The notes: generated by a model from the sequence alone, not told the origin. 64,000 bases of DNA from Malacoraja senta (GCA_038087875.1 JAXLNO010005840.1:62001-126000); one strand, 5' to 3'. Counted from the stretch's first letter, positions 1 through 57,115 are shown. Numbers and translations are program-made.

Positions 1-262
1 GTAGAGCTGCTGCCTTACTGCACCAGAGACCTGGGTTTGATCCTGACTACAGGTGCTGTCTGCAAGGACATTGTATGTTCTCCCTGTGACTGCGTGGGTT
101 TCCTCCCACACTACAAAGACATACAGGTTTGTAGGTTACTTGGCTTAGGTAAAATTGTAAATTGTCCGTACTGTGTAGGTTAGTGTAAATGTATGGGTTG
201 ATCACTATTCAGCGAGGACTCAGTGAGCTGAGGGGCCTGTATCTGCAGCATATCTCTAAAGC
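1..262 (+). mobile_element. HE1/V-SINE-like tRNA-derived SINE (5' cut by window edge)
   Basis: B-box-like GGTTTGATCC followed by the conserved body (ggtgctgtc...gttctccctgtgac...cccacact..aaagac) shared with many copies in the window. Confidence 0.8.
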
Positions 263-368
263 CTAAAGTCTAAATCCACAGCTTAGTTAAGAGTGTGAGT
301 TGAGACTGTTATCTCAGTCCAGGAGATTTATGGTCTCAAGTGATCAGCCTCATTGACTTGCCACTTAC

Positions 369-641
369 CCTGTGGAACATTGACTCCCTGCAGCAGAGTT
401 GCATGTTCGATGTAACAGGAGAATTTTGCCACATCTTCTCTATTCAGTTGAATTGTATTCTTCAGCTGGTAAGTCCCATCCCAATTGGGCAACAGATCAC
501 TGGATTCAGACTCATGGACCCCCTCACCATCTCTCAGCCACGTTACATCGATGGCCCGTGGCTAGAAGCCTGTGACAAGGCAGGAGAGTCTCAGTGATTG
601 CGACCCATCACGTTTAATCCCAATAAACACCTCAGGGGTTT
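369..641 (-). pseudogene. MHC class I-like alpha3 (Ig C1-set) exon with premature stop
   Basis: 273-bp exon between ttgcag and gtaagt; C1-set motifs LSCLVTGF*PRAIDVTW, LLPNWDGTYQL, FSCYIEH; the canonical GFYP reads GF*P (TAG at 562-564). Confidence 0.93.
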
Positions 642-766
642 CTGCAAGTGTAAGAAGAGTCAGAATCAGTGAAGACATGAACAAAAGCCTTCAATTGTAA
701 GATCACTGCAACTCACCACTTTCCCAATCAGAGTTTTTTCTCTGGCTGAACTAAGTTTTCAGTCTA

Positions 767-897
767 GACCCAAAATGCTGGAATAACTCAGCAGGTCAGG
801 CAGCATTCTGGAGAGAAGGAATGCCCAGAGATGCTATCTGACCCACTGAGTTACACCAACATCTTCTATCTTCAGTGTAAACCATCATCTGCAGTTC
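767..897. mobile_element. Fold-back remnant of the Penelope-like terminal module (hammerhead core absent)
   Basis: caaaatgctggaataactcagcaggtcaggcagcat... followed directly by its inverted copy ...gatgctatctgacccactgagttacacca...catctgcagttc. Confidence 0.6.
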
Positions 898-1455
898 TAT
901 CTTGCACAAAGTTTACAGCCTTTTCTCTTTTCATTTTGCATTTCTGGCAAAACAACAAAACATTTAGCTTTAATATCACTGACATGCTCCTTATCTTAGC
1001 TCCAGGCTTTAACTGACAGCACAGATGAAAGGGGAATGCAGGCCCAATGGAGGAGTATAACTCACCATTGGGATTGATACTGTAGACATGATTGCTTCTA
1101 CCTGTTCATGAATCTCTGCTGAATAATAACACTAAATATTCCAAGAGGGAATGGGAGGAAGAAGTTCTTCAAATAGAGAACTGTTGGAAATTGAATGTCA
1201 CCATCCCAAGGAGTAATAGAGGCAAATAGAGAATCTGATTGGGTTTCTGATCAGTTCAGCAACAGACCCTTCAGGCCACAAGGTCGGTGCTAAACATAAG
1301 ACCAAGATACATATTCCTCCATTTCCTGAATATCTATATGACTGTGGATAAAGGACACTGGTACAATATTTATCTTTCACTTGCACTTCCTACCCACTGG
1401 TTCCATCTAAGAGGCACGTTGCCAGACAATTTACTGATACCCACGTTGTAGAACA

Positions 1456-1746
1456 GGGTGGCGAAGCGATCGAGCTACTGCCTTACAGCGCCAGAGACCT
1501 GGGTTTGTTACTAACTACGGGTGCTTGTCTTTACAGAGTTTGTACGTTCTCCCTGTGACCTGCGTGGGTTTTATCCGAGATCTTCGGTTTCCCCTCACAC
1601 TCGAAAGACGTACAAATTTGTAGTTTAATTGGATTGGTATAAATGCAAATTGTCCCTAGTGTGTGTAGGATAGTGTTAGTGTGCGGGCATGGCTGCTCGG
1701 TGCGGTCTCGGTGGGTTTCCGCGCTGTATCACTAAACTAAACTAAA
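1456..1746 (+). mobile_element. HE1/V-SINE-like SINE
   Basis: tRNA-like head, conserved central body and (ACTAA)n tail. Confidence 0.85.
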
Positions 1747-1845
1747 TAATTACTCAAGTGACAGCCTGAAGTGCATGATATTTCCCACCTGATCTATCCA
1801 GAGGATATCCTCTGGCCCATCAGTCAGAGTGCCTACGTCGTGTAC

Positions 1846-2120
1846 CTCTCCTCTGTAGTGCTTCTTGTCCACACTCCAGATATATCCGCAGCCACTTCAC
1901 ACAGTCCTTCTCCAGGAGATCTTTAAAATACTTGTTATGAAGGTGTTGACATTCCACCGATCTGCTAGCATCTGGAAATCTGGACGTAGTGCAATCCAGC
2001 GCATTCTGTCCTTGTCAAAAGCACAGGCATCCTCCCCATCATAACCCAGTCTGACAAACCCATCAGTGGAATTGTCACTGTCCACTTCACAGCCGCAGAA
2101 ACCCTGCACAAAGCAAACAG
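1846..2120 (-). pseudogene. MHC class I-like alpha2 exon with 1-bp deletion
   Basis: ccccag acceptor then (T)VCFVQGFCGCEVD...GYDGEDACAFDKDRMRWIA...DRWN. The frame then shifts to KYFKDLLEKDCVKWLRIYLECGQEALQRR with a gtac donor. Length is 275 bp, one base short of the 276 that phase 1-1 requires. Confidence 0.92.
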
Positions 2121-3179
2121 CTGGGGCTGAGGTAGGGGTGGAGGATTTGTGTTGGGGAGAGTGGATGGAAGGGAGAGGCAATTTACAAATCAGTTCTCAG
2201 CATGGTACAAACAGGCATAACAGAACACAACATGGAGCTGTACAGCACAGGAGCAGGTTTAGCTCAGAGATACAGCGCGGAAACAGGCCCTTCGGCCCAC
2301 CGAGTCCGCACCGACCAGTGGTCCCCGCATATTAACACTATCCTACACAGACTACTTTTCTTTTCCAGCTTTCTCCACTCTACCCCATCACTCTAAATGG
2401 TCCTGGTCTCATATGTTTTCTGTCCATTTTTCCACAGCATGCTGCCTGACTCGTTGAGTTCCTCCTGTTTGTTTTAAATTCAGATTGGCAGCATCTGCAG
2501 TTTGCTGTGACTCCATCTTAGCACAATGGATTATCAATGTGGATTCAGTGAGCAGAAGGGCCGGTTTCCATGCTGTGTGACTCAATGACCCATGGTCTAT
2601 ATACTGAGGGCATGGACTAACCTCAAGTGTTATGGGGGGAGCTTTACTGTTGCGGATGTAACACTAAAGGAGTTCTGCTGTGTCAGAAGGGTGGAACTCA
2701 GATTCTGCACTGTCGTACATAAAGAACAGAGGAAGAAGTGCATTGTCAGATGGGCAATGCTACAGAGCCAACAGGTCAGTCTGAAGGTTAAGGCAATGCA
2801 GATGGGAAGTACATCAAGGCTGTTGCACTGTGTGGGATTGCTACACCCTCTGAGGATTGTTGCCAATATTGAGGGGATGCTGGATTAACACAATATTATT
2901 ACTGAGGGAATACCTCATAGTCACCATCAACCAGCTTAAATCAAGATCCCATCTCTAGATGATCAGGCTATAAATAAACTAATGGTTTCTCCCTCATTCC
3001 AGCCCAACAAAACAGATGATCCAATCCATCCACTTATTACTGGTGTTGAATATCAAATGCTTAACCCATAAAGAGACTATCACCAGCCAACTGTTATGAC
3101 TGTGTGTTCAGCAGTTAGGACACATTAAATATAGACGATGGGCCGTGTCTCTATCAAAATGTTATGGAGTAAATGTCTG

Positions 3180-3805
3180 AAACAGCATCAATGGTGCTGA
3201 AGTGAAAAAGGTTGAGAGTTTCTGGTTCCCCTACTGCCTCAGGAGACTAAGGAAATGCGGCATCTCCAATGACTCTTACAAACTTCTACAAATGTGCCAT
3301 AGAAAGCATACTGACAGGTTGCATCACAACTTAGTTTGGAAAGAGTTCTGCCCAAGACCGCTGAAAATTGCAGAGAGGTGGAGATGTAGCACAGTCGATC
3401 ACACAAACATGATTCCCCACCAGTGAATCCATCTGTATTTCAACTGGTTCAGGAAAGCAGACAACATAATCAAAGATTTGTCCCGTTCTGGTCACTCCTT
3501 CTTCTTCCTGCAGAAGGTACGTAAGCATTAAAGCGTGCACCACCAGACTCAGTAACTGTTTCCTCCCCTATGTTATCAGGTTTCTGAACAGTCCTCCCTT
3601 ATGCTAGGGTTCACCTCAACCCCATTGTAGACACTGGACTTTGTCTCTGGCACTGGTACATTACAATGCTGAGAACTACATTCTGCACTCTTTGCTCTAC
3701 CTATTGTACGAGTTTGGTTTGATTGTATTTATGAATAGTTTTCTTTGATGTGATTGACTAACGCAAAAAAAGTGTATCAGAGAATCATGTGTCAACAATA
3801 AAACT
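3180..3805 (+). mobile_element. Rex1/Babar-like LINE 3' fragment in MHC intron
   Basis: Degenerate RT C-terminal reading (VKKVESF..., LRRLRKCGIS..., CITT..) ending in a ...tgtgtcaacaataaa tail. Confidence 0.6.
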
Positions 3806-3866
3806 AAAACAAAATCCATCTGTGTCATCACTGAGTGTCTACCCCAGGTCCGCTCACGACACTTAC

Positions 3867-4127
3867 TCGAGATACCATGTTGCTGTTGCTAGACTATCTC
3901 AGCATTTCCTCTGACAATCCCATGAAAACCTGCAACTGTGATGGCCATTGAATCCCAGTGATCATGCGGGAAAGACTGGGCCATCCATCGCTGTCTGGGA
4001 ACAGCCCGCTCTAGTGTGCTGTCAAAATATGCTATCTGGACGTCATCCAGCATTGCTACCATACTGTACTCAGGCAGCTCATTCAATCCATGGTTCAACA
4101 GGTAGTAAAATGCAAGATGGTGTAAAT
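3867..4127 (-). pseudogene. MHC class I-like alpha1 exon with premature stop
   Basis: 261-bp exon between ttgcag and gtaagt: DLHHLAFYYLLNHGLNELPEYSMVAMLDDVQIAYFDSTLERAVPRQRWMAQSFPHDHWDSMAITVAGFHGIVRGNAEIV*QQQHGIS. Confidence 0.92.
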
Positions 4128-4318
4128 CTGCAATGCATAAACAAAAATAAGTATGATTGTATCATTCACTGAAAATAACTAAGTTATTAATGCTAAAACT
4201 GATAACAATACAATAACTTTGAATAAGGGAGTCACAAGGACCTGCAGATGCAAGTGCTGGATGAACTCAGTGGGGCAGGCAGCATCAATGATCAGGTGAC
4301 AATTTGGGTCAGGAGCCT

Positions 4319-4625
4319 TTAGTTTAGTTTTTAGCTTAGAGATACAGCATGGAAACAGGCCCTTCGTGCGAGTCCACACTGACCAGCAACCCCCACACAA
4401 TAACACTATCCTACACACACTAGGGACAATTTACATTCTAGACCAAGCCAATTAACCTACAAACCTATACGTCTTTGGAATGTGGGAAGAATCCGAACAT
4501 CTCGGGAAAAACCCACACGGTAATGGGGAGAATGGACAAACTCCGTACAGACAGCATCCGTAATCAGGATCCAACCTGGGTCTATGGTGCTGTAATCGAG
4601 TAAGTCTACCGCTGCACCACTGAGC
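4319..4625 (-). mobile_element. HE1/V-SINE-like SINE
   Basis: Reverse complement of the SINE consensus, with (TTTAG)n tail at the low-coordinate end. Confidence 0.85.
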
Positions 4626-5696
4626 CTTCTTCAAGAGTTGGCATGATGGGCTCTGATACCTACTCCACCAATTATGGTCGAGGTATTGAATGATCCTACT
4701 GGATTGTTTCCCATCTTCAAAGATCTATTATTGTCTATCATGTCGATAGGTTCTACTAGTTACAATATTCCAAAATTTGAAGAATATTTTATTATATTAA
4801 GAAACTGGACAATGTCAAGGAGACTTTATAGAATCATAGAGAGGTAAAGTCAAAGAGTCATACAGCAGGGAATCAGGGCCTATGGCTCAACTTGCCACAC
4901 CAACCAACATGCCTCATCTACACTACCTGTATTTCATCAGTACATAAGTTCTAGGAGAATAATTAGGCCATTCAGCCCATCGGCCATTCAATCATGGCTG
5001 AGCTATCTCTCCCTATCAACCACATTCTCCTGCCTGCACCCCATAACCCTTGAAACCCATACTGATCAAGAATCTGTTAATCTCCACCTGAGAAATATCC
5101 ATTGATGTGGGCTCTACAGCTGACTGAGGCCCATATCCTTATAAGCCTATCCTATCCATGTACCTGATTAAATGATTCTTAAATGTCGTGACAGTACGCG
5201 CCTGAACTACCTTCTCCGGCAGTTCATTCAGTACACCCACCACCCTTTGTGTAACAATGCTATGCCTCAGGTTCCTATTAAATCATTCCCCCCTCATCTT
5301 AAACTTATGTTCACTGGGTACAGCACATAAAAGGCCCTTTAGCCCACCAAGTTCGTGGTGACCATCAAACACCTATTTATACCTGTGGTACGCTAACCCT
5401 TTTAATATTTGCCAATCTCCCATTAACACCTCCCTCATCCCCTCCACCAATTCTAATACATATGCATGACCAATTCACACTGGCCAATTTACCTTTCAGC
5501 CCGGCATTTTGGGGACGTGCGGGGAAACTGGAATAACCATAGCAAACACACGTTTGCAGGGGGGAAAAAAAGCCAGGTTGTAAGAGATCAGGATTGAGTC
5601 CAGGTCCTCATAGGCAGCTGCAACACAGCTCATAGAGATGGGGGGGGGGGGGGGGGTGGTGGAGACTGAGATAAACAGGGCCTAAATTGAAACTCG

Positions 5697-6245
5697 ACAC
5701 AAAATACTGGAGTAACTCAGTGGGTCAGGCAGCATCTCCGGAGAAAAGGAAAAGGTGACGTTTCGTGTCGAGACCCTTCTTCAGAATGAGAGTCAGGGGA
5801 CAGAGAACCGAGAGATATGACAAAGTACAATGAAATATATGCACCCCGACTCTGTCTGATGCAGTGTCTTGACCTGAAACTCCACCTATTCCTTTTCTCC
5901 AGCGATGCTGCCTGACTTGCTGAGTTACTCCAGCCTTTTGTATCTATCTTCGGTGTAAACCAGCATCTGCATCAGCAGTCAGAAGAAGGGTCTCGACCCG
6001 AAACGTCACCCATACCTTCTCTCTAGGGATGCTGCCTGTGCCGCTGAGTTACTCCAGCTTTATTGTCTATCTTCGGTTTAAATCAGCTTCTGCAGTTCCT
6101 TCTTACACATCTGCACTTCCTTCCTACACTTGTGTCAACTGAAACATCACCTAACCATGTTCTCCAGACATACTGCCTGACCTGCTGAATTACTCCAGTA
6201 TTTTATGTGTATTAACCAGCATGTGCAGTTTCTTGTTTCCACATG
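5697..6245. mobile_element. Cluster of inverted and tandem Penelope-like terminal modules
   Basis: One module in one orientation (5697-5790) followed by three in the opposite orientation; hammerhead-like cores with point defects at about 5753-5786 (minus) and 5977-6010 (plus). Confidence 0.65.
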
Positions 6246-7259
6246 CATAAGCAGTATTTGTTCTGTGATAAAGATTACATGCAGCACACCAGACAGTGTC
6301 AAAGTTCATGTGTTTAAGTGAAGTGAGAAGGGGCCCCGAGGGCAGAGTTAGAAGTGTCTGTTTTAGTGTTACCAGGAGAAACATAAGACGGCTAAGAGTG
6401 GAATACAGTAACGATAAAATCCATGTGGCTTCCCAAAACACTCCACAGCCGAGGATTTTTGTTTTATATGTTATTATTTCAACATGGCCATCACCATTAT
6501 ATGGTTTCGGCCCGAAACGTTGCCTATTTCCTTCGCTCCATAGATGCTGCTGCACCCGCTGACTTTCTCCAGCATTTTTGTGTACCTTCGATTTTCCAGC
6601 ATCTGCAGTTCCTTCTTTAACACCATTATATTTACTTTCATTTGATAACAATGGGATGAAACTTTCAGGACGAGTAGGTTTGTAATCTCCAAGCCTTGAT
6701 GAATGTCAGAATAGTTAGAAAGGTACCATTGTGTGGGAAGAAATTGCTCATCAGATTCCCATTCAATCTTTCCCCCCTCAATGTAAACCTATGTCCTCTG
6801 GTTCTCGATTCTGTAATCTGTTGAATATGTTGCCCACTTGAAAATTTCCAGATTGAGATTGATAGATTTTTGTTCATTAAGGGTGTAATGGGCTGGAGTT
6901 CGGCCACAATGTCTGTGCCGAACATGATGTCAAGTTCAACTAAACTCTTCATGCTTGTAGATGATTCATATCCCTCAATTCCCTGCATATCCACGTGCCT
7001 ATCCTCAAGCTTCTTAAATCTCATTATCGTCTTCTGGGGAAGTGGTGATGGGGTAATGGATAGGGTCTGCAGGACAGGAAGCATGCAACAAACAACAAGA
7101 TGGCAACAACATTAACACAACATTGATTGGTCATTTAATGCAGGCTGAATTTTACCATCATGTGAGTGTCTAACACCAGCTGAGGAAATCTTGGAGAGGT
7201 GGAACACCTACTAATGCAGAAGTCACTTCTTTATTGAAAGTGCACATCACCTGAATTCT

Positions 7260-7675
7260 GTCTGAGGCATTAGTGCAAGGACAGATTGGACAAACATGGA
7301 TTGTTTTCTCTTGTATACTGGAGGTTGAAGGGAGACCTGATGAAAGTGCACAACATGGTGAGAGGCACAGACAGAGTGGACAGCCAGAACCTTTTTCCCA
7401 GGGTGGAAATGTTGAAGACCAGAGAACATCACTTTAAGGTTGGAGAAGCAATGTTCAAAGGAGATGAGCGGAGCAAGTTGTTTTATGTGGAGGGTGGTGG
7501 ACATCTGTAACGCGCTGCCAGTGGTGGTTGTGGTGATGGTGGCAGATATAACAGTTACATTTCAGAGGCTTTTAGATAGGTACATAGATAGGCAGGGAAT
7601 GGCCGGATACAGATCACATACAGGTAGAGGAGATTAGTTTAGTTTGTTCGGCACAGACATTGTGGGCCGAAGGTA
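7260..7675 (+). mobile_element. CR1 LINE 3' fragment
   Basis: GLFSL..RLKGDLMKV...DRVDSQNLFPRVEM.KTREH; typical CR1 ORF2 C-terminus and 3' UTR. Confidence 0.8.
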
Positions 7676-7729
7676 GACAAAATGCTGAGGTAACAGCGGG
7701 TCAGGCAGCATCTCTGGAGAAAAGGAACG

Positions 7730-7763
7730 GGTGACGTTTCGGGTCGAGACCCTTCTTCAGACT
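7730..7763 (-). ncRNA. Minimal type I hammerhead ribozyme motif (Penelope-associated), intact core
   Basis: Minus strand reads AGU CUGAAGA A GGGU-CUCG-ACCC GAAAC GUC ACC: core C3-A9, stem II hairpin, G12-A14, palindromic ACGU stem III, GUC cleavage triplet. Confidence 0.7.
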
Positions 7764-8063
7764 GAAGGACTGAAGGACCTGCTCCTGTGCTGTATTGTAC
7801 TATGTTCTATGTTCATTATTTACATGTATTCAGTTCTTCTGTTCAATGGATTGCCAAGGTAACCATAGTATATATAACTTCCCACAGGAGCCTTTACAAC
7901 TAAGGAAAGACCGTTACCCAAAATTATTAATACATTCAATTCAATCATTCAATTAATACATCCAAGACAATGAACCCAGGGCAAACACAGGGACTGTGCA
8001 ACAGTAAATATAATCAGTTTTGTTGTTTCCTCAAAGTTCACAGGTTGAAGCAGTATTGCTTAC

Positions 8064-8115
8064 CAGAGGAGACAGTGGCCACACCGTAAGTGTTCAGTAA
8101 GGTAAAAAGAAGCAT
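8064..8115 (-). pseudogene. MHC class I-like leader exon
   Basis: ATG CTT CTT TTT ACC TTA CTG ... GTC TCC TCT G|gtaagc = MLLFTLLNTYGVATVSS; phase 1 joins alpha1 in frame (G+AT = Asp). Confidence 0.85.
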
Positions 8116-8253
8116 GTTTAACAGCCGCCCACAGCACTATTTAACCAGCAGAGTAAATGCAGCAACAGTAACATAATCTCTTGTACGTTTTTAACAGAAC
8201 TCTGGTGTGAAGGTAATTATTGGTCCATGTATACACAAACCTGATAACCAGAT

Positions 8254-28433: not shown

Positions 28434-29869
28434 TTAAAAGTAACGGTGTGCAAGCAGGCTGGAGGAGCGGGCAAAGGCATTGCCACAGAGCGGGTAGGTG
28501 AAGGGGTGCTGACCGGTGTGGACTCGCCGGTGCTCCAGCAGGTGGTCAAGTCGGGTGAAGCCCTTTCCACAGGACGGGCAGGGGAAGGGACGCTCACCGC
28601 TGTGGGTACGCCGGTGCTGCCACAGGCTGGACATGCTGGTGAAACCCTTGCCACACTCAGCGCACACATAGGGTGTCTCTCCGGTGTGTATCCGCTGGTG
28701 CTCCCGCAGCCCCCGTGCTCTCTTGTTACAGTGGGAGCAGCTGCTCGCCGGCGTGGGTCCGCTGGTGCTGCCGCAACCCCCGCGAGCTGTCAAACTCCTC
28801 ACCGCAGTACGGGCAGTCGTAGGGCTGGCCACTTTTGTGCACGCGCTGGTAAGACAGGGGGTGGGAGGCCATGGCAAAGCGCTCTCCACACACCGGGCTG
28901 GGGATGGGACCGTCGCCGGCGTGCACCCGCTGGTGGGACAGATGATAGGTGGAGCGGGTGAAGCCCTTGCCGCACTGGGTGCAGGTGTAGGGGCGCTCAC
29001 CAGTGTGGGTGCGCTGATGGAACAGCAGGTGACCGGACTGGGTGAAGCCCTTGCCGCACTGGGCGCAGGTGTAGGGGCGCTCGCCGGTGTGGGTGCACTG
29101 GTGGGATAGCAGGGTGCAGGAGCGGGTGAAGCCCTTGCCGCACTGGGTACAGGTGTAGGGGCGCTCGCCGGTGTGGGTGCGCTGGTGGGACAGCAGGTTG
29201 CCAGACTGGATGAAGCCCTTGCCGCACTGGGTACAGGTGTAGGGGGCGCTCGTCGGTGTGGGTGCGCTGGTGCACCTGCAGGCTTCTGGAGTGAGTGAAG
29301 CCCTTGCCACACTGGGCGCAGGTGTAGGGACGCTCGCCGGTGTGGGTGCGTTGGTGCACCAGCAGGATGCTGGAGTGGGTGAAGCCTTTGCCGCACTGGG
29401 TGCAGGTGTAGGGGCGCTCGCCTGTGTGGGAGCGCTGGTGGGACAGCAGGTTGCTGGAGGAGTTGAAGCCCTTACCGCACTGGGCGCAGGTATAGGGGTG
29501 CTCGCCAGTGTGGGAGCGCTGGTGGGACAGCAGGTTGCTGGAGCGGGTGAAGCCCTTGCCGCAGTCGCTGCAGGTGTAGGGGCGCTCGCCAGTGTAGGTG
29601 CGCTGGTGGGACAGCAGGTTGCTGGAGCGGGTGAAGACCTTGCCGCAGTCGCTGCAGGTGTAGGGTCGTTCCCCGGTGTGCACGCGCCTGTGCATCTTCA
29701 GTTCCGGCGGCGACTTGAAGCTCTTGCCGCAGTCGGAGCAGTCGAAGGGGCGTTCTCCCGTGTGAACCCGCCGGTGGATCTCCAGCCGGCTCGGGTACTG
29801 CCAGGCCTTGCCACACACGTCGCACTCATAACGCTTCTCCTTGTTGTGCCCCCTCATGTGGTCCTCCAT
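28434..29869 (-). pseudogene. Tandem C2H2 (TGERP-linker) zinc-finger gene, about 17 fingers, two frameshifts
   Basis: ATG 29869 MEDHMRGHNKEKRYECDVCGKAWQYPSRLEIHRRVHTGERPF... There is a +1 G in the run at 29242-29246 after finger 7 and a deletion/frameshift near 28715-28745. An upstream acceptor (pyrimidine tract + CAG) opens the exon at 30006. Confidence 0.9.
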
Positions 29870-30693: not shown

Positions 30694-30900
30694 NNNNNNN
30701 NNNNNNNNNNNNNNNNNNNNNNNNNNNNNNNNNNNNNNNNNNNNNNNNNNNNNNNNNNNNNNNNNNNNNNNNNNNNNNNNNNNNNNNNNNNNNNNNNNNN
30801 NNNNNNNNNNNNNNNNNNNNNNNNNNNNNNNNNNNNNNNNNNNNNNNNNNNNNNNNNNNNNNNNNNNNNNNNNNNNNNNNNNNNNNNNNNNNNNNNNNNN
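30694..30900. other. Assembly gap (207 N)
   Basis: Run of N. Confidence 1.
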
Positions 30901-55552: not shown

Positions 55553-57115
55553 ATAACCATATAACCATATAACAATTACAGCACGGAAACAGGCCATCTC
55601 GACCCTTCTTGTCCGTGCCGAACACGTATTCTCCCCTAGTCCCATATACCTGCGCTCAGACCATAACCCTCCATTCCTTTCCCGTCCATATAACTATCCA
55701 ATTTATTTTTAAATGATAGAAACGAACCTGCCTCCACCACCTTCACTGGAAGCTCATTCCACACAGCCACCACTCTCTGAGTAAAGAAGTTCCCCCTCAT
55801 GTTACCCCTAAACTTCTGTCCTTTAATTCTCAAGTCATGTCCCCTTGTTTGAATCTTCCCTACTCTCAGTGGGAAAAGCTTATCCACGTCAACTCTGTCT
55901 ATCTCTCTCATCATTTTAAAGACCTCTATCAAGTCCCCCCTTAACCTTCTGCGCTCCAAAGAATAAAGCCCTAACTTGTTCAACCTTTCTCTGTAACTTA
56001 GTTGCTGAAACCCAGGCAACATTCTAGTAAATCTCCTCTGTACTCTCTCTATTTTGTTGACATCCTTCCTATAATTAGGCGACCAAAATTGTACACCATA
56101 CTCCAGAATTGGCCTCACCAATGCCTTGTACAATTTTAACATTACATCCCAACTTCTATACTCAATGCTCTGATTTATAAAAGCCAGAACACAAAAAGCT
56201 TTCTTTACCACCCTATCTACATGAGATTCCACTTTCAGGGAACTGTCCACAGTTATTCCAAGATCCCTCTGTTCACCTGCATTCTTCAATTCCCTACCAT
56301 TTACCATGTACGTCCTATTTTGATTTGTCCTGCCAAGATGTAGCACCTCACACTTATCAGCATTAAACTCCATCTGCCATCTTTCAGCCCACTCTTCCAA
56401 CCGGCATAAATCTCTCTGTAGACTTTGAAAATCTACTTCATTATCCACAGCCCCACCTATCTTAGTATCATCTGCATACTTACTAATCCAATTTACCACA
56501 CCACCATCCAGATCATTGATGTACATGACAAACAACAGTGGACCCAACACAGATCCCTGTGGCACCCCACTAGTCACTGGCCTCCAACCTGACCAACAAC
56601 CATCCACCATTACTCTCTGGCATCTCCCATTCAGCCACTGTTGAATCCATCTTGCTACTCCACCATTAATACCCAACCATTGAACCTTCTTAACCAACCT
56701 TCCGTGAGGAACCTTGTCAAAGGCCTTACTGAAGTCCATATATACAACTTCCACGGCTTTACCCTCATCAATTTCCCGAGTAACCTCTTCAAAAAATTCA
56801 AGAAGATTAGTCAAACATGACCTTCCAGGCACAAATCCATGTTGACTGTTCCTAATCAGCCCCTGTTTATCGAGATGCTTATATATATTATCTCTAAGTA
56901 TCCTTTCCATTAATTTGCCCACCAGTGACGTCAAACTAACAGGTCTATAATAGCTAGGTTTACTCTTTAGACCCCTTTTTAAACAATGGAACAACATGCG
57001 CAGTACGCCAATCCTCCGGCACTATTCCCGTTTCTAATGACATTTGAAATATTTCTGTCATAGCCCCTGCTATTTCTACACTAACTTCCCTCAATGTCCT
57101 AGGGAATATCCTGTC
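55553..57115 (-). mobile_element. Young 5'-truncated CR1 with uninterrupted ORF2 C-terminal 453 codons (55636-56997)
   Basis: All RT motifs in one frame ([33 protein letters not shown]); (TTATATGG)n tail. Confidence 0.95.

Follow-up and report, generated by a model that had tools for sequence, protein, structure and literature searches.

A dead or null skate copy of a probably old non-classical MHC class I lineage with a conserved groove lacking peptide anchors

Introduction

Can a class I gene whose groove has lost most of the classical peptide anchors, and which is itself interrupted, still tell something about the ligand of its working ancestor, or is such a groove a product of decay? This question is raised by a gene on the minus strand of the window, by which we mean the whole 64-kb stretch of Malacoraja senta DNA analysed here. 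In a preliminary description of the sequence, the groove was read as divergent and unusually apolar, and an ancestor with a non-peptide ligand was proposed.

Non-peptide antigen presentation has long been held to start with CD1 and MR1 in tetrapods. UGA and UFA have been reported, as a personal communication, to be lipid binders like CD1d (PMC12562908), and CD1-like features of UFA are cited as unpublished data (PMC10751288). UFA and UGA suggest that non-peptide presentation might date back to the origin of jawed vertebrates. This picture would be widened by one more conserved lineage next to UGA, with a still more hydrophobic groove and with its peptide-terminus anchors lost. We consider it likely that the gene in the window belongs to such a lineage: a dead copy or null allele of an old, non-classical class I lineage that is sister to UGA, is represented by roughly one gene in each shark or ray species and has a conserved, anchor-less groove for which a hydrophobic non-peptide ligand is predicted.

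Gene organization

Exons for a leader and for the alpha1, alpha2 and alpha3 domains could be delineated in the window, and every junction between them is of phase 1 (Table 1). The start of alpha2 was corrected to 2120, behind a ccccag acceptor, and does not lie at a later cag within the coding FVQ. The leader exon is kept at the orthologous locus of L. erinacea. Translation of the minus strand gives DLHHLAFYYLLNHGLNELPEYSMVAMLDDVQIAYFDS...MAITVAGFHGIVRGNAEIV*QQQHGIS for alpha1 and TVCFVQGFCGCEV...GFVRLGYDGEDACAF...MLADRWNVNTF(-1 nt)NKYFKDLLEKDCVKWLRIYLECGQEALQRR for alpha2. All three pieces searched, alpha1 and the two halves of alpha2, match Pfam MHC_I, and the orthologous L. erinacea protein (P0001) matches PF00129 and PF07654. 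The features of the MHC class I superfamily are present, namely an MHC_I platform followed by a C1-set alpha3, one exon per domain and the C101-C164 pair. Neither an exon for the transmembrane region and tail nor a second class I gene was detected in the 64-kb window, and a search of the window gave no Rfam match.

Table 1. Features of the window, with positions counted from its first nucleotide.
Feature	Position	Strand	Remarks
Leader exon	8115-8064	-	ATG at 8115; MLLFTLLNTYGVATVSS; phase-1 donor G/GTAAGC; in-frame join to alpha1
alpha1 exon, 261 nt	4127-3867	-	Acceptor cag at 4128-4130, donor A/GTAAGT; Pfam MHC_I
alpha2 exon, 275 nt (276 in orthologues)	2120-1846	-	Acceptor ccccag, donor G/GTACAC; Pfam MHC_I on both halves
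alpha3 exon, 273 nt, C1-set Ig domain	641-369	-	Splice sites identical to L. erinacea
In-frame TAG, alpha1 position 82	3891-3889	-	Tyr in all orthologues except Hypanus (His)
1-nt deletion in alpha2, frameshift between W147 and C164	1936..1937	-	TTCAT-AACAAG versus TTCATGAACAAG, alignment to L. erinacea locus L001
In-frame TAG in alpha3, at the codon of the invariant Tyr in GFYP	564-562	-	
C2H2 zinc-finger open frame	28437-29396	-	
Reverse-transcriptase open frame	55639-56997	-	RVT_1, E 2e-33
Assembly gap, 207 N	30694-30900		

Lesions and haplotypes

The assembled copy carries three disabling lesions, a stop codon in alpha1, a single-nucleotide deletion in alpha2 and a stop codon in alpha3 (Table 1). 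Over positions 300-4200 they were compared with contigs from two further conspecific samples (X1 and X2; 0.81 and 0.76 of sampled words), a kind of data in which rare variants can be hidden. At the alpha3 TAG, the contigs of X1 and X2 match the window with zero differences; the site reads TAC in contigs of two other species (X3, X4) and at the L. erinacea locus. The alpha1 codon is TAC (Tyr) at full depth in both X1 and X2 (place 3889, C>G). The base deleted in alpha2 is present in 100% of the depth of X1 and in about 77% of that of X2, and as about 23% of the X2 depth lacks it, the assembly is apparently not the only source of the deletion allele. We infer that the alpha3 stop is an older, shared lesion and that the alpha1 stop and the alpha2 deletion arose on the assembled haplotype. 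The copy in the window is a dead gene or a null allele.

In both same-species samples, positions 2634-2944 and 3795-3853 are also covered by minor contigs, which have about 93% identity to the window and about one quarter of the main depth. They point to a further related copy in the species or to a divergent haplotype.

Residues of the groove

Residue numbers were checked against PDB chains by phmmer alignment. Residues 154-181 of H-2Kd aligned to the stretch KYFKDLLEKDC... yield L159, C164 and Y171, HLA/RT1-type chains yield L143, R146 and W147, and H-2Kb, RT1 and grass carp chains yield F7 and H59. The changes that had been read by eye (F7, H59, L143, R146 and L159, with W147 and Y171 kept) are thereby confirmed. 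The N86 sequon, too, is absent as described, because position 86 is His; position 84 is Gln. At the classical anchors Y7, Y59, R/Y84, T143, K146, W147, Y159 and Y171 the window gene has F, H, Q, L, R, W, L and Y, which leaves W147 and Y171 as the only retained members of the classical set, the N86 sequon included. This sequon is missing across the whole lineage, and an N-S-T sequon in the alpha2 loop is conserved.

The strings that had been quoted as apolar (LAFYYLL, YSMVAM, FVQGFC, FVRL and MAITVAGFHGIV) were all found in the translation. The four additional cysteines ascribed to alpha2 could be identified as C93, C99, C124 and C174, which stand beside the canonical C101 and C164. C99 is found across the entire lineage and C174 in most of its members, C124 is confined to batoids and C93 to the species of the window.

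The description of the groove as unusually apolar was borne out by Kyte-Doolittle scoring of 44 approximate pocket columns, which were placed via alignment landmarks to classical pocket positions and not from a structure. The mean over these columns is 1.12 for the window gene and 1.21 for its lineage, 0.35 for UGA, 1.04 for a CD1b-like sequence and -0.13 for sequences with the classical signature (n=16). When 117 class I sequences are ranked by groove hydropathy, the top 12 are all members of the lineage of the window gene. Charged or His residues occupy 3 of the 44 columns (H59, R146 and D163).

Orthologues and conservation

Relatives were collected in two steps. An exhaustive, profile-free search started from the alpha1 piece and gave P0001, the L. 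erinacea protein, at 93% identity; P0001 is 92% identical to the window gene and served as the query of a second search. The search with P0001 returned one protein per species in Pristis, Mobula and Hypanus. One protein per species was likewise found in Pristiophorus, Heptranchias, two Scyliorhinus, Stegostoma, Hemiscyllium, Chiloscyllium, Mustelus and Cetorhinus. All of these orthologues are annotated "MR1-like" by NCBI.

Twelve intact orthologues share the signature F7, H59, Y82, Q84, no N86, C99, C101, L143, R146, W147, L159, C164 and Y171, with the exception of a Leu at position 147 in three orectolobiforms (P0157, P0158 and P0161, from Stegostoma, Hemiscyllium and Chiloscyllium). The preliminary description had allowed that intact relatives might retain the anchors, in which case the changes would be drift. 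The changed residues (F7, H59, Q84, no N86, C99, L143, R146, L159) are carried by 12 of 12, and the anchor changes are therefore ancient features of the lineage and not drift after inactivation.

Within the lineage, conservation is higher in the groove columns than in the remainder of alpha1-alpha2 (entropy 0.38 versus 0.67; 25 of 44 versus 54 of 135 columns invariant; p=0.017). No significant difference between groove and non-groove conservation was seen for UGA or for classical-type sequences. The groove strings of the window and of L. erinacea differ at one place, where L. erinacea has the derived state; given this and the conservation of the groove, the groove of the window is the ancestral, selected one. 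The eight replacements that are private to the window include none in the 44 groove columns and none in the 109 columns that are invariant elsewhere. The polarised private replacements of the skates (n=18) likewise spare all 109 columns that are invariant among the other orthologues (p=8e-5). These comparisons show that the anchors for the peptide termini had gone before the split of sharks and rays, and that what the window contains is the working groove of the family and not a product of decay.

Skate loci and selection

The P0001 locus, on an unplaced scaffold of L. erinacea (L001), is colinear with window 1-8212, with 6-7.5% substitutions in introns and identical splice sites, and is intact at all three lesion sites. 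P0001 had been considered as an intact paralogue from the same genome, which was ruled out by the colinearity, by the degree of intron divergence and by the contigs of the window's species, among which none was P0001-like in alpha3. Since such contigs were not found in that species, L001 is an orthologue in another skate. The NCBI model of P0001 (XP_055486430.1), compared with L001:10001-19283, continues beyond alpha2 for 12 intronic residues (GTRPRHSDWWNG), begins alpha2 at an acceptor further upstream, which adds two residues, and omits the leader exon at L001:101-152.

A second copy in L. erinacea (L002:10001-14271, JAMYXN010000412.1) lacks alpha1, reads TGA in place of the C164 codon and has lost 3 nt in alpha3. 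Its divergence is 9-12% from the window and from L001 alike; NCBI annotates it as a 263-aa protein (P0164), and it is an older dead duplicate.

Selection was estimated after Nei-Gojobori over 261 shared codons. The comparison of the window with L. erinacea gave an omega of 0.65 (21 nonsynonymous and 9 synonymous changes), with 0.59 on the window branch and 0.69 on the L. erinacea branch. Omega was 0.22 between skate and sawfish and 0.17 between sawfish and sevengill shark. The skate value exceeds 0.22 (p=0.004) and is indistinguishable from neutrality (p=0.19). Omega is thus raised, yet none of the 18 private replacements falls in an invariant column, so that constraint in skates looks relaxed but not abolished until recently.

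Phylogeny and synteny

In a careful maximum-likelihood tree of 55 rows, the lineage of the window forms a clade with support 100/100, in which the shark and batoid parts are separate. It is sister to a UGA clade, itself supported at 100/100, with 95/88 (94/80 without one long row), and the window gene lies outside that UGA clade of 9CH4 and its kin. Sequences with the full classical signature (Y7, Y59, R84, N86, Y99, T143, K146, W147, Y159, Y171) are placed elsewhere. Only one CD1b-like sequence was included; its branch has a length of 2.4 and does not join the lineage. In a protein tree, P0164 appeared as the sister of the window gene. This was dismissed as a long-branch effect, as by DNA this alpha1-less pseudogene is the outlier of the three.

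The signal for the UGA sisterhood comes mainly from alpha1. Taken singly, alpha2 and alpha3 do not recover it but are not in conflict with it either, and no exon shuffling is therefore seen. An alpha1/alpha2 chimera had been considered, as alpha1 strongly matches 9CH4 and the alpha2 pieces did not list it. It was ruled out, because full-length P0001 aligns along all of 9CH4 and the trees of the single domains are compatible with the UGA sisterhood.

UGA orthologues are present alongside the lineage in these sharks and rays (among others in L. erinacea, in Rhinoraja and, with three copies, in Pristis), and the two lineages are therefore paralogues. In the sawfish Pristis pectinata, the orthologue of the window gene (LOC127585976, 13,956,125-13,977,896) lies between B2M/BRD2 and COL11A2/RXRB. 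It is found 42 kb from a UGA gene, as its direct neighbour on the same strand, within an MHC-Ib cluster (CM019888.1, 13.956-14.057 Mb; L003, L005), an arrangement that fits an old tandem duplication. The supplement of one study labels this sawfish gene just "MHC-Ib" (PMC10751288). Two more F10-like MHC-Ib genes are seen downstream, and the other two UGA proteins of the sawfish map to the same chromosome.

Comparison with known class I molecules

Among solved structures the best match is 9CH4, entitled "shark nonclassical MHC class I, UGA" in the PDB (E 1.5e-21 when alpha1 alone is searched, E 2.9e-60 with P0001). The entry 8GM8 might conceivably be UFA. An AlphaFold model of the sawfish orthologue (pLDDT 91) also has 9CH4 as its best structural match, with Z 27.5 and an rmsd of 2.3 A over 268 residues. 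An earlier model, built from alpha1-alpha2 with 15 sequences, was poor (pLDDT 54) and was set aside. The fold matches of UGA, chicken BF2 and YF1, MR1 and CD1 all fall within about 2 Z units, and the fold is therefore uninformative on the class of ligand.

UGA shares with the lineage Q84, L159, the AGFHG helix motif, a hydrophobic groove, the motif NxYFKxLLEKDC and one extra residue between W147 and C164. The two are only about 40% identical, however, and UGA keeps Y7, Y59, N86 and K146, has F99 and F143 and possesses the less hydrophobic groove (0.35 versus 1.21). The short tails of UGA contain a YxxPhi motif in 10 of 13 gene models (YNAV, YNVI, YQTI, YENI, YESI; P0008, P0238-P0248), whereas the tails of the orthologues (P0151-P0161) are longer, rich in Gln and Arg and devoid of YxxPhi.

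The lineage resembles CD1 in its lost peptide anchors, in genes that are conserved with little variation and in a groove-column hydropathy that is as high or higher. In contrast to CD1, to which no closer kinship is detectable, it keeps the canonical alpha2 disulfide and lengths and has no tyrosine sorting motif. With MR1 the gene has in common that it is class I-like, conserved and monomorphic in appearance; alpha2 matches MR1 with E about 1e-8, but the gene groups with MR1 by sequence no more than with classical class I. In MR1, Lys43 captures the ligand by forming a Schiff base with it. This residue aligns by phmmer to Ala41 of P0001, in a column that holds A, T, I or C across the lineage, and the name "MR1" is therefore unsupported. 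Cartilaginous-fish UAA (PDB 6LUP) has the fold, the exon phases, the C101-C164 disulfide and the C1-set alpha3 in common with the lineage, but forms a separate clade, and nearly all of the classical anchors are missing in the lineage. Chicken YF1*7.1 and class I molecules that present lipopeptides offer a hydrophobic groove for lipid-bearing ligands and are an equally good structural match. YF1*7.1, however, belongs to an unrelated lineage and retains more of the classical anchors, so that the likeness is one of kind only.

Alternative explanations

Decay could by itself have produced such a groove. If the anchor loss and the apolar residues were drift after gene death, the ancestor would have been an ordinary peptide-binding class I molecule, and both the disabling lesions and the raised omega of the window branch would fit. 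This is extremely unlikely, as the anchor signature and the groove are common to all twelve intact orthologues, the private replacements of the window avoid groove and invariant columns alike and, among the features noted at the outset, only C93 is private to the species. An origin within the classical UAA lineage, or within the multicopy non-classical families that descend from it, followed by divergence, is practically inconceivable, even though many elasmobranch class I genes are named alike by NCBI and the alpha2 pieces, taken alone, have grass carp classical class I and MR1 as their best matches. Only two classical anchors are kept, and the tree sets the lineage apart; nesting within classical class I had been named as the outcome that would speak against a separate lineage, and forcing a union with the elasmobranch classical-signature clade was rejected (delta lnL 53, AU p=0.0003). 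The lesions themselves might be assembly errors in a gene that works in this species, for which one could cite the contigs of the other two samples, without the alpha1 stop and mostly without the alpha2 deletion. The exact match of the alpha3 TAG in the contigs of both samples, the share of X2 depth in the deletion state and the raised omega make this very improbable.

A non-classical lineage without lipid presentation is a possibility that we regard as real but not as the favoured one. The molecule might hold hydrophobic peptides or lipopeptides (cf. YF1*7.1, Mamu-B*098) or a small metabolite, or its groove might be closed (cf. HFE, FcRn, ZAG). YF1*7.1 and the lipopeptide-presenting molecules match the structure as well as CD1 does, the tails of the orthologues have no YxxPhi endosomal motif, and the class of a ligand is not readable from sequence. 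On the other side, the groove columns are almost free of charged and His residues, the Lys that captures ligand in MR1 is replaced, the nearest relative UGA is a reported lipid binder and the groove is conserved as in a presenter of a single ligand. A hydrophobic non-peptide ligand for the lineage remains plausible, a proposal that is made because the groove is anchor-less, nearly uncharged and conserved and because of the kinship with UGA and the reported lipid binding of UGA and UFA.

Proposed function and significance

We propose that the working protein would pair with beta2-microglobulin at the cell surface and that its groove would hold one conserved hydrophobic non-peptide, lipid-like ligand. 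By analogy with what is reported for UGA and known for CD1, this ligand may be shown to a receptor of limited diversity. Because YxxPhi is missing from the orthologue tails, endosomal routing through a tyrosine motif, as in UGA, CD1b and CD1d, is probably not used.

A published name for the lineage was not found in the literature consulted, the texts of which gave no UDA, UFA or UGA sequences; it could be a named single-copy lineage such as UDA. Its characterization as a poorly described elasmobranch lineage is therefore a fair one, with the qualification that its members are annotated as "MR1-like" by NCBI and that its sister UGA has a crystal structure. That this kind of gene is annotated in public genomes and that the structure of UGA is solved was already known. 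New are the history of the lesions in the different haplotypes, an omega that is elevated in the two skates alike and the unaltered groove of the window.

A more far-reaching interpretation, which we offer only tentatively and consider doubtful, is that of an unnamed third presenter of lipid-type or small hydrophobic ligands in sharks and rays, standing in tandem with its sister UGA, with the most hydrophobic groove of all, retained for about 300 million years and now being lost in skates. If this were true, skates would have been caught in the loss of the gene, through segregating null alleles, an omega of about 0.6-0.7 and an alpha1-less dead copy in L. erinacea, and their nulls would be natural knock-outs for probing the role of the molecule. 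Intact orthologues, for example those of sawfish and catshark, would be a clear target for ligand elution and structural work. The copy in the window adds two things, a faithful record of the skate groove and a case of gene decay in skates with lesions that differ between haplotypes.

The introns of the gene contain stretches (693-954, 1479-1871 and 2134-2395) at which contig depth is thousands of times that of single-copy sequence in all four runs, which represent four samples of three species. These stretches are very high-copy interspersed repeats common to skates.
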